Sequence record: NC_048792.1
Reading direction: 5' to 3' (one strand)
DNA: 64,000 bases
Every line of letters begins with the position of its first letter. Positions within the stretch are counted from its first letter, which is position 1. The translations under genes were made by a program, and so were the position numbers. Positions 45,458 through 48,587 of this stretch are shown here, piece after piece. Under the pieces are notes generated by a model that searched no databases, was not told the DNA's origin, and saw nothing but the letters and a program-made list of their open reading frames with translations.

Positions 45458-45525
45458 CGGAGCATAGGAGAGGGCTAAATGCCCTCTCTTTATTTTTTGT
45501 TTCATTGACAAATAAGGAGATCGCT

Positions 45526-46053
45526 TTGTCCATTATTCTTTATCACAAGGGTGTTATTGCTGCTGACTCAAGAGGGATTATTGATCAGGGGAAATACACA
45601 GAGCGTTTGTGCGGTATGCTCAAGTTATTCTCATTCGGCGGGAAAGTCGTTATGGGGATGGTTGGCGATAACACGACTATTGACTGGGCGTGTAAAGAGT
45701 TCTTTTATTTCAGTGAGAAAGTCATTGAAATGGAGGAGGGGGATTTAGATACGCTTCCATTATCTAAAGACATCCTGGAACGATACGGTATGGAAGACTC
45801 TACTCGTACGCTTTGCTTCATGACACGTAGACACCATTACTACGTCGGGGTGACTGGTATCATACGCTGGGAGAAAGGTATCCCATGGGCAGCAGGTAAC
45901 GGGATGCGTACTGCTCTGCAATCGTTATCTAACGGATTCGATGTAGAGTCATCGGTGCGGAACGCCATATTGATGAATCCTGATTGCGGTGGCACGGTAG
46001 TCATTCACCATGCTAAAGATCTGGAGCTTATCAAAAGGAAGAAATCTAAATGA
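45526..46053 (+). CDS. Ntn-hydrolase (proteasome-beta/HslV-like) protein
   Basis: AAGGAG RBS places the start at TTG 45526 (M-S-IILY); IAADSR, AAGNG, CGG motifs. Confidence 0.7.
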   Translation: MSIILYHKGVIAADSRGIIDQGKYTERLCGMLKLFSFGGKVVMGMVGDNTTIDWACKEFFYFSEKVIEMEEGDLDTLPLSKDILERYGMEDSTRTLCFMTRRHHYYVGVTGIIRWEKGIPWAAGNGMRTALQSLSNGFDVESSVRNAILMNPDCGGTVVIHHAKDLELIKRKKSK

Positions 46054-47149: not shown

Positions 47150-47319
47150 TTTCCCCTTGATTCTATGATTCCGGGAAGTAAGCAGTACAAATAACCCCTC
47201 CCTTTTGGGAGGGATTCTTAAGAGGGTCGTCCCTCTTTTTTTGTTCCCTTATTTTTTCAAATACTCTTTAAATAGTTTAGTAACAACTAGACTATCACCC
47301 CTCCTTTAAGGAATAAACC

Positions 47320-47478
47320 ATGCAACAGTCAGCACCTGCTAATGTAGCAGAAGTAAAACCAGAGAACGCTTATTTCGAATCTGGTTCAAACGAGCAACCT
47401 GTGTCAGTCTCTCAATGCGACTTCCATTACGGTAGCCTGGACGGCCTGGCAACCATTATGGCAAACCCTCAGCACTAA
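47320..47478 (+). CDS. 52-aa peptide (not in ORF track)
   Basis: AAGGA RBS; MQQSAPANVAEV...GLATIMANPQH. Confidence 0.65.
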   Translation: MQQSAPANVAEVKPENAYFESGSNEQPVSVSQCDFHYGSLDGLATIMANPQH

Positions 47479-47489
47479 GGAAAATAAAC

Positions 47490-47759
47490 GTGACTAAAGA
47501 TCTTTCTTCCTATTTCAAACCAGCCGCCGATTCTACCGCTCTGCCAGGCCAAACTCGTGGCGAAACTAAATTAACAACGACCTTCGACGAGCTCCCGGTA
47601 ACTGGCGACGGCGCAAAGGTTATCGATCAAAGCGGTGATTCCCTGGACTCTTTGTTCGACGGTATCGATTTCGATGCGGTAGCTGCTCGTAACGAAGAGC
47701 GGGCTGAAAGCGGTGAAGAGTTCGTCGATGACGGCGACTGCGAAGGCTGCAAGATCTGA
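47490..47759 (+). CDS. acidic peptide ending in an NrdA-like redox tail (DDGDCEGCKI)
   Basis: AAGGA RBS, GTG start; compare E. coli NrdA ...DDGCESGACKI. Confidence 0.7.
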   Translation: MTKDLSSYFKPAADSTALPGQTRGETKLTTTFDELPVTGDGAKVIDQSGDSLDSLFDGIDFDAVAARNEERAESGEEFVDDGDCEGCKI

Positions 47760-47790: not shown

Positions 47791-47871
47791 TAATCGAATC
47801 AGTCGATTAAATCGAGAGTAGGATTTTCCTACTCTCTACTATTTTACAATTTAGTTTAGAGAGATTTACAC

Positions 47872-48293: not shown

Positions 48294-48587
48294 ATGTCTG
48301 AACTTAAACAAATAGAGGAAGCGATGATGAACATGAACCAAGTAGAAAAGGAAGAAATGTCGGATGCCCTGATCTCCCTTCAGTTGTGCAACTACAACAA
48401 CCCGACTAACAACGTCGCGATTAAGAACTGCGCTGCATCTATCCGTGGCCGGGCACTGACTTTACCGGTACGTGATCTGATGCATCTGGTTCAGATGTCG
48501 CCGCAACCACTGCGTTCAGTTATCAACGCGCTGCAGAAGTACCGTCCAACTGACTTGAAGGAAGGTACGTTGTCAATACACCGTTAA
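48294..48587 (+). CDS. hypothetical protein
   Basis: GGGA RBS. Confidence 0.7.
   Translation: MSELKQIEEAMMNMNQVEKEEMSDALISLQLCNYNNPTNNVAIKNCAASIRGRALTLPVRDLMHLVQMSPQPLRSVINALQKYRPTDLKEGTLSIHR

Follow-up and report, generated by a model that had tools for sequence, protein, structure and literature searches.

The window analysed here, a stretch of 64,000 nucleotides, corresponds to the last 64 kb of the genome of Serratia phage Moabite (record positions 209,934-273,933; MK994515.1, 100% identity). Moabite is a phiKZ-like jumbo myophage of 273,933 bp that encodes a PhuZ tubulin as well as split multisubunit RNA polymerases, and its host is Serratia marcescens. A short gene in the window, CPT_Moabite_321 (QDB71351.1), encodes a product that ends in DDGDCEGCKI; its CDS and RBS are annotated identically in the deposited record, where the product is labelled a hypothetical protein. 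We refer to it as the free-tail gene, after its resemblance to the C-terminal tail of the ribonucleotide reductase (RNR) subunit NrdA. The features of the locus, in window positions, are as follows.

47220-47247, + strand: terminator-like hairpin and T-run ending the preceding unit (read from the sequence; annotated terminator)
47320-47478, + strand: 52-aa ORF CPT_Moabite_320, the 5' neighbour within the same terminator-bounded unit (annotation)
47478-47481, + strand: RBS AGGA, 8 nt 5' of the GTG (sequence and record annotation)
47490-47759, + strand: free-tail CDS of 89 aa, CPT_Moabite_321 / QDB71351.1, with a GTG start and the stop codon within the coordinates
47490-47522, + strand: N-terminal motif M.KDLS.Y..P, common only to jumbo-phage family members (alignments)
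47523-47636, + strand: variable, low-confidence linker, 26 residues of which are missing from the Totoro homologue
47637-47708, + strand: conserved acidic/hydrophobic motif D.LD.LF.GIDFDAVA, continuing into a predicted helix (residues 61-73, RN.E motif; alignment and AlphaFold2)
47709-47756, + strand: NrdA-type tail, residues 74-89, an acidic run followed by DCEGCKI-COOH with Cys84 and Cys87 (hhalign, comparison with real NrdA tails)
47814-47846, + strand: terminator-like hairpin 3' of the free-tail gene (sequence; annotated terminator)

CPT_Moabite_320 and CPT_Moabite_321 form a two-gene unit with terminator-like hairpins at both ends, and a counterpart of CPT_Moabite_320 is present at the equivalent position in phage Totoro. 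The GTG start is supported by the N-terminus M.KDLS.Y..P, which is common to Totoro, Yoloswag and two metagenomic relatives. An earlier note, made from the sequence alone, had described an acidic, probably disordered protein of 89 aa with its own RBS and a DDGDCEGCKI end. This description was confirmed: the RBS is AGGA, the product has a pI of 4.05, with 21 D/E against 8 K/R and exactly two cysteines, and an AlphaFold2 model built on a 23-sequence alignment gave a mean pLDDT of 55, with a single helix (61-73) and coil elsewhere. When all Moabite ORFs were read in six frames, stop to stop and at a minimum of 30 codons, one of 4219 ended in C-x(2,4)-C-K-[IL], and this one was the free-tail gene; a tail arising by chance is thus unlikely.

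To compare the C-terminus with NrdA we read the tails of real enzymes and used hhalign, because HMMER and BLASTP are blind to so short a likeness. HMMER searches of PDB chains with the protein and with the family profile gave no meaningful match, and BLASTP against full-length E. coli NrdA left the tails unaligned, since composition-based statistics suppress so short a match. The NrdA of E. coli K-12 terminates in ...SIQDDGCESGACKI, the last residues being DDGCESGACKI. Among the Enterobacterales NrdA sequences listed, which include Erwinia, Pantoea, Pectobacterium, Brenneria, Enterobacter, Salmonella and Klebsiella and do not include Serratia, 120 of 120 end in Cx4C followed by K-I, as DD[GD]CE[SG]GACKI or a close variant. 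The class Ib enzyme NrdE of E. coli ends in ...EGCVSCAL, that is, CxxC, any residue and then a hydrophobic one, while T4 NrdA ends in ...KADDCAACKL and the NrdA of Serratia phage 3M in ...PCESCVI. A degenerate DNA pattern for DC[ED]GCKI followed by a stop matched 112 IMG/VR contigs, 13 of them with an NrdA. Eight of these 13 NrdAs are full length, are 47-57% identical to E. coli NrdA along their whole length and finish with acidic residues and then DC[ED]GCKI, the same heptad as the free tail; one of the eight matches the NrdA of a T4-like Klebsiella phage at all 104 aligned residues. Alignment of 28 microproteins with the eight phage NrdAs by hhalign produced one local match, which covered the last 10 columns of each (84% probability, E 7e-6). 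Judged by sequence, the likeness of the free-tail C-terminus to an RNR alpha-type tail is real, and the nearest match is the phage-type CxxC tail, not the host Cx4C tail. The earlier note had proposed an NrdA-alpha-like tail with a Cys pair, and the tails of E. coli, T4 and the eight phage NrdAs, together with the hhalign match, bear it out.

The free-tail protein shares with T4-type NrdA an acidic, disordered stretch that leads into D-C-x-x-C-K-[IL] at the carboxyl end, with the Cys pair, a lysine and I/L at the extreme C-terminus. In NrdA, however, the tail is fused to the catalytic barrel PF02867, which the 89-aa protein lacks (no Pfam match at E<=1); it has its own upstream motif and helix instead, and is encoded in genomes without an RNR. 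Its spacing is CxxC, whereas that of the enterobacterial host NrdA is Cx4C. An exhaustive profile search of 1.84 billion representatives revealed no family member of NrdA length. By these comparisons the protein is not an NrdA and is NrdA-like in its tail only. An identity as a thioredoxin-fold redoxin was also rejected: thioredoxin, glutaredoxin and NrdH redoxins have a thioredoxin fold in which CxxC opens a helix, whereas the free-tail protein has its Cys pair two residues from the C-terminus, no Pfam match and no fold in the AlphaFold2 model. The C-terminal tail of NrdB docks beta on alpha; a loose hydrophobic-x-D-F-x-hydrophobic resemblance between that tail and the N-terminal motif of the microprotein, seen by eye, was given no weight.

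Analysis by tblastn revealed that the last 35-45 residues recur at the C-terminus of small proteins across several unrelated phage groups, covering the five genera Moabitevirus, Loessnervirus, Koutsourovirus, Yoloswagvirus and Rivsvirus. Moabite-like phages carry the protein with 97.8-98.9% identity in eight further listed records (seven phages, 2050HW being listed twice), and the 63-aa Totoro homologue, from whose N-terminal half 26 residues are missing, is 57% identical. Further carriers were found in Loessnervirus of the Chaseviridae (Y2, Berlingot, SSEM1), Koutsourovirus of the Autographiviridae (phiKDA1, KKP 3828), Rivsvirus (pEa_SNUABM_5, 208 aa) and Yoloswagvirus (Yoloswag, 146 aa). What lengthens the jumbo-phage proteins of 146 and 208 aa at the N-terminus is hyper-acidic, low-complexity sequence without a domain. 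Residues 57-89 matched positions 13-47 of the 47 positions of PHROG 10239 (E 1.8e-4), a functionally unannotated profile limited to the short C-terminal module. Searching 5.8 billion proteins with a profile identified 23 family members, and an exhaustive HMMER search over the 1.84 billion representatives gave 23 matches, every one of 38-98 aa.

The family, which has no name, consists of small acidic proteins, mostly of 38-98 aa, with a D-hydrophobic-D-hydrophobic-D motif, a helix, an acidic run, a DC[ED]GCK[IL] end and no other domain; the Moabite protein has all of these features. Across the 23 relatives, which come from several phage families, Asp60, Asp62, Arg67, Asn68, Glu70, Asp80, Cys84, Cys87 and Ile89 are conserved in at least 90%, and outside the conserved residues identity drops to about 35%. 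The earlier note had named a lack of conservation of the Cys pair in homologues as part of what would refute its idea, and the pair is kept at this level. Both CxxC and Cx4C spacings fall within the family, since one member (P0038) ends in DCAGGGCKI. The divergent members are all phage-borne. One Koutsourovirus-type member of the 23 (P0020) has a conserved body and a different C-terminal end that lacks the Cys pair, which may reflect a sequencing error or a frame change.

Several further observations concern individual carriers and the distribution of the tail itself. Koutsourovirus-type members (P0005-P0016, P0019, P0021, L003:2851-3135 and L007:2851-3129) have an N-terminal C-x3-C-x3-C-x4-C-P motif and a fifth cysteine in the linker, which may point to a metal or iron-sulfur site joined to the tail. 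In Erwinia phage Y2 (NC_019504.1, 16155-16256; L259) the free-tail ORF is unannotated and the tblastn match lies partly under a CDS labelled 'Rz-like spanin', and in other Loessnervirus records the free-tail ORF overlaps the start of a putative i-spanin gene. Proteins of the PF13876 family (N4 gp49 / Sf6 gp66), about 115 aa long, end in the same acidic DC[ED]GCKI on nine IMG/VR viral contigs, four of which are L189:1913-2266 (-), L171:2822-3178 (-), L179:1753-2106 (+) and L243:11321-11665 (-); the tail is thus portable between unrelated protein families. Half of the pattern matches, at 57 IMG/VR loci (for example L153, and also L022), belong to a recurrent ORF of about 133 codons that ends in ...LLVFTYLDCEGCKI. 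This ORF has the end LDCEGCKI, no acidic run and a longer antisense ORF overlapping it, and probably represents a false gene call in a conserved prophage region.

To determine whether the carrier phages encode an RNR, we examined their genomes by tblastn. Queries with E. coli NrdA, NrdB, NrdE, NrdF, NrdH, NrdI and YfaE and with T4 NrdC, NrdH and NrdG returned only noise in Moabite (complete), phiKDA1 and Yoloswag (complete), with class III RNR covered through its activase and not its catalytic subunit; queries with NrdA, NrdB and YfaE likewise returned only noise in the first 50 of the 56.6 kb of Y2. A thioredoxin- or glutaredoxin-like gene was not detected in Moabite, phiKDA1 or Yoloswag, and the annotations of the carrier phages list no RNR subunit. 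The earlier note had remarked that no nrdA adjoins the gene, and this extends to the whole 273,933-bp genome, from which nrdA and nrdB are absent by tblastn. Within the sample examined, which covers four lineages and is not a census, the tail is in cis where a phage has an NrdA, and no RNR accompanies a free tail. Outside the window, Moabite 170176-170631 (L013:20176-20631) is annotated as a 'ribonucleotide reductase class Ib family protein'. The Pfam NrdI model matches it only weakly (E 1.3e-4), scoring 22.5 bits where the cut-off is 27, it matches no NrdI structure by sequence, and NrdE and NrdF are absent from the genome. Its class Ib RNR annotation looks doubtful.

These results bear directly on the leading idea of the earlier note, in which the protein would act as a trans shuttle for a tail-less phage NrdA. 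The likeness of the tail is the one point in favour of this idea. Against it, Moabite, phiKDA1 and Yoloswag lack NrdA, NrdB, NrdE and NrdF by tblastn, the searches of Y2 with NrdA and NrdB found nothing in its first 50 kb, and carrier annotations are free of RNR subunits. The check that the note had suggested, whether the phage nrdA lacks its C-terminal CxxC, found no nrdA in Moabite to inspect, and the phage NrdAs that were seen bear their own tail. The idea did not hold up, and we regard it as extremely improbable.

The pattern for DC[ED]GCKI followed by a stop was also searched in bacteria, using one genome per species. At least 120 genomes matched, each at a single site, and nearly all were Enterobacterales, including Serratia, Erwinia, Pantoea, Rahnella, Ewingella, Tatumella, Sodalis, Hafnia and Budvicia. 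In at least 111 of 120 loci the site was a free-standing gene of 42-45 codons and not nrdA; the few others were unrelated or cut ORFs. The free-standing gene comes with an RBS of its own, together with a -10-like hexamer and a rho-independent terminator, and occupies fixed, non-prophage locations: in 61 loci it is flanked by a yedA-type transporter gene and by dgcQ or yedP-type genes (Erwiniaceae), and in 32 by a ylaC-like gene and a K+/H+ antiporter gene (Serratia type). No conserved operator, such as an RNR-regulon site, was found upstream, where the -10-like hexamer alone is conserved. The product begins with ..DD.F.FDIDA.L, continues into a helix-like stretch and ends in ...DE.DCEGCKI; an example is the free-standing microprotein of Serratia ureilytica (L054:3805-3936). 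In S. marcescens, the host species of Moabite, an identical 43-aa protein is present on at least 1000 contigs and is labelled 'hypothetical'. No Pfam or NCBIfam model matched the 43-aa protein of Serratia, Erwinia and Pantoea. One UniRef cluster, that of the 43-aa Serratia protein (P0042), is called 'conjugal transfer protein TraD'; this name was rejected, as it has no Pfam or NCBIfam support and is probably a misnomer arising from the acidic composition.

The chromosomal and phage proteins resemble each other in being free-standing and acidic, with a DCEGCKI end and a hydrophobic-D-hydrophobic-D-A motif followed by a helix. Comparison of the two families by hhalign gave a probability of 97% (E 2e-11) over the last 16 columns only; the chromosomal protein is half the length of the Moabite protein, and the N-terminal parts were left unaligned. 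When members of both families were aligned together, forms of 41-42 aa from phages and prophages linked the two. The earlier note had overlooked this wide family and its conserved chromosomal microprotein in the order to which the host belongs. A divergent copy in Pantoea stewartii (L072:4412-4540, -) is near-identical to a copy on a 35.9-kb viral contig (L208:1867-1989, +), from which it differs by one residue in the start region, so some bacterial copies are prophage-borne and do not represent the core chromosomal gene. Searches of 5,426 E. coli genomes by blastn, with the tail-coding DNA and the Serratia chromosomal gene, returned nothing useful. In E. coli K-12 the syntenic yedA-dgcQ interval contains the unrelated YodC, and neither blastn nor inspection of this interval revealed a counterpart.

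The genomic context of the free-tail gene differs between lineages. In Yoloswag and pEa_SNUABM_5 it lies among genes for cytidine or dCMP deaminase and thymidylate synthase, and in Chaseviridae-like phages genes for thymidylate synthase or ThyX, a primase-helicase and a polymerase are found within 2-3 kb. A gp1.7-like gene and endonuclease VII lie near it in phiKDA1. The neighbours in Moabite (an HslV-like peptidase, uncharacterised proteins, one of them with DUF7740, and an NAD-dependent ligase) say little. The HslV-family peptidase homologue (45505-46053, +; PHROG 1040, E 2e-21) lies three genes 5' of CPT_Moabite_321 and is followed by two conserved uncharacterised proteins. The DUF7740 protein (48294-48587, +; L140:6627-6860) is encoded one or two genes 3' of the free-tail gene both in Moabite and on an unrelated metagenomic jumbo-phage contig. 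Moabite and other carriers encode salvage or conversion enzymes (dUTPase, thymidylate kinases, thymidylate synthase, deaminases) and no RNR.

In class Ia RNR, the active-site disulfide of the alpha subunit is reduced after each turnover by the Cys pair of a flexible tail, which is itself reduced by thioredoxin or glutaredoxin and is disordered in crystal structures (bioRxiv 10.1101/2021.07.31.454598; PMC3483043). The near-invariance of both cysteines points to dithiol-disulfide chemistry in the free tails, and the partners must be those of the host because the carrier genomes have no RNR and no detectable redoxin. Together these two points favour trans action on host NrdA, and our preferred reading, to which we assign a probability of about 0.3, is that the product is a stand-alone dithiol tail which host redoxins would reduce and which would act in trans on the class Ia RNR of the host. 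The two cysteines would cycle between dithiol and disulfide in the infected cell as they do in the NrdA tail, and would be reduced by the host thioredoxin or glutaredoxin that normally serves that tail. The reduced free tail would then reach the active site of host NrdA in trans and add reducing capacity to regeneration after turnover, with the upstream acidic/hydrophobic motif and helix supplying docking. A phage of 274 kb that relies on the host enzyme would thereby gain support for its dNTP supply. This proposal is consistent with the identity of the tail to real NrdA tails and the hhalign match, with the retention of both cysteines in at least 90% of relatives and the single Cx4C variant, a pattern that fits dithiol chemistry better than mere binding, with the lack of RNR and redoxin genes in carriers while NrdA-bearing phages keep the tail in cis, and with the nucleotide-supply neighbourhood in other lineages. 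On the other hand, the shared element is only 10-16 residues long, the local concentration of a free tail lies far below that of a tethered one so that a gain in rate is not obvious, and host NrdA proteins retain their own intact tails. The free tails are also CxxC like phage NrdA where the host has Cx4C, the neighbours in Moabite are not nucleotide-metabolism genes, and the tail is shared with PF13876 proteins, so it may be a general docking or redox tag and not specific to RNR.

A blocking, Sml1-like role is nearly as plausible as a trans-reductant role, and we consider it possible, if on the improbable side, that the free tail competes with host RNR regeneration by occupying a site on host NrdA or on its reductant. 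Host dNTP synthesis would then stall, and the phage would salvage nucleotides from host DNA and might starve co-infecting phages. The same evidence for tail mimicry applies here, carriers have salvage or conversion enzymes and no RNR, and a CxxC closer to the phage-type tail than to the host Cx4C would suit interference with the T4-type enzymes of rival phages. Yeast Sml1 offers a precedent: it is small and disordered, and it interferes with what the C-terminal tail of R1 does (Zhang et al. 2007, PNAS 104:2217, as it appears in the reference list of PMC4078304). As far as that entry goes the likeness is one of manner only, a small disordered protein acting through the C-terminal Cys-pair tail of the large subunit. 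Sml1 is eukaryotic, and the free-tail protein has no sequence relation to it and does not belong to the Sml1/Spd1 families (no Pfam match at E<=1, no meaningful PDB match); nor is Sml1 known to be itself a copy of the RNR tail. An occupancy inhibitor, moreover, need not keep both cysteines, yet both are near-invariant here, and shutting off the host RNR would be risky for a 274-kb phage without its own. We give less credence to an adaptor or decoy for thioredoxin or glutaredoxin that acts independently of RNR, with the tail as a generic handle to recruit or titrate a host redoxin. The occurrence of one tail on three unrelated kinds of protein (NrdA, acidic microproteins and PF13876 proteins) is how a portable docking motif would behave, and with no redoxin gene detected in Moabite, a partner would have to come from the host. 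This remains doubtful, as a two-cysteine substrate resolves a mixed disulfide quickly and makes a poor trap, a second partner is not identifiable and the association with nucleotide genes is left unexplained.

Two further explanations were considered. The terminal CxxC could bind zinc, iron or copper, possibly in a site formed across a dimer or with the cysteines of a partner, and its likeness to NrdA would then be convergent. The four-Cys motif and fifth cysteine of Koutsourovirus members agree with this, and a single CxxC on a flexible terminus could supply one half of such a site. We judge it unlikely, since Moabite, chromosomal and most other members have two cysteines only and the flanks (the acidic run, E/D and G inside the pair, the terminal K-I) match redox-shuttle tails of NrdA. 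It is also conceivable that the gene is a functionless chance ORF or a decaying 3'-end fragment of nrdA, being short and without a domain, and the pattern scan did catch one clearly spurious recurrent ORF ending in LDCEGCKI. This has next to no probability given the gene's own RBS and terminators, a tail that is invariant across genera and phage families where the rest drops to about 35% identity, and a related chromosomal gene that, in at least 111 of 120 bacterial loci, is single-copy and comes with its own signals (RBS, terminator and -10-like hexamer).

It is textbook chemistry that class Ia RNR is regenerated through its flexible alpha tail, with thioredoxin or glutaredoxin reducing that tail. 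A full-text literature search for the motif returned nothing on a free-standing tail, a search for phage small proteins acting on NrdA returned nothing relevant, and there appears to be no earlier description of a free-standing RNR tail. The novelty lies in finding a known functional element, the RNR-type tail, in a new and autonomous form. We suggest tentatively, at less than even odds, that stand-alone RNR-tail microproteins are an unrecognised class of factors that plug into the thiol relay of class Ia RNR and are encoded by Enterobacterales chromosomes and by many phages without an RNR. If this is correct, they would be the first reductant tail to act in trans or else the first counterpart of Sml1-type control in bacteria or phages, and phages would direct dNTP synthesis in the host while lacking a gene for the enzyme. 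Because the family is limited in size, clearly delimited and broadly distributed, the question can be tested directly. If the microproteins act on RNR or on its reductants, they would provide a new control point for the bacterial dNTP supply and a new way for phages without an RNR, jumbo phages included, to manage the host enzyme.
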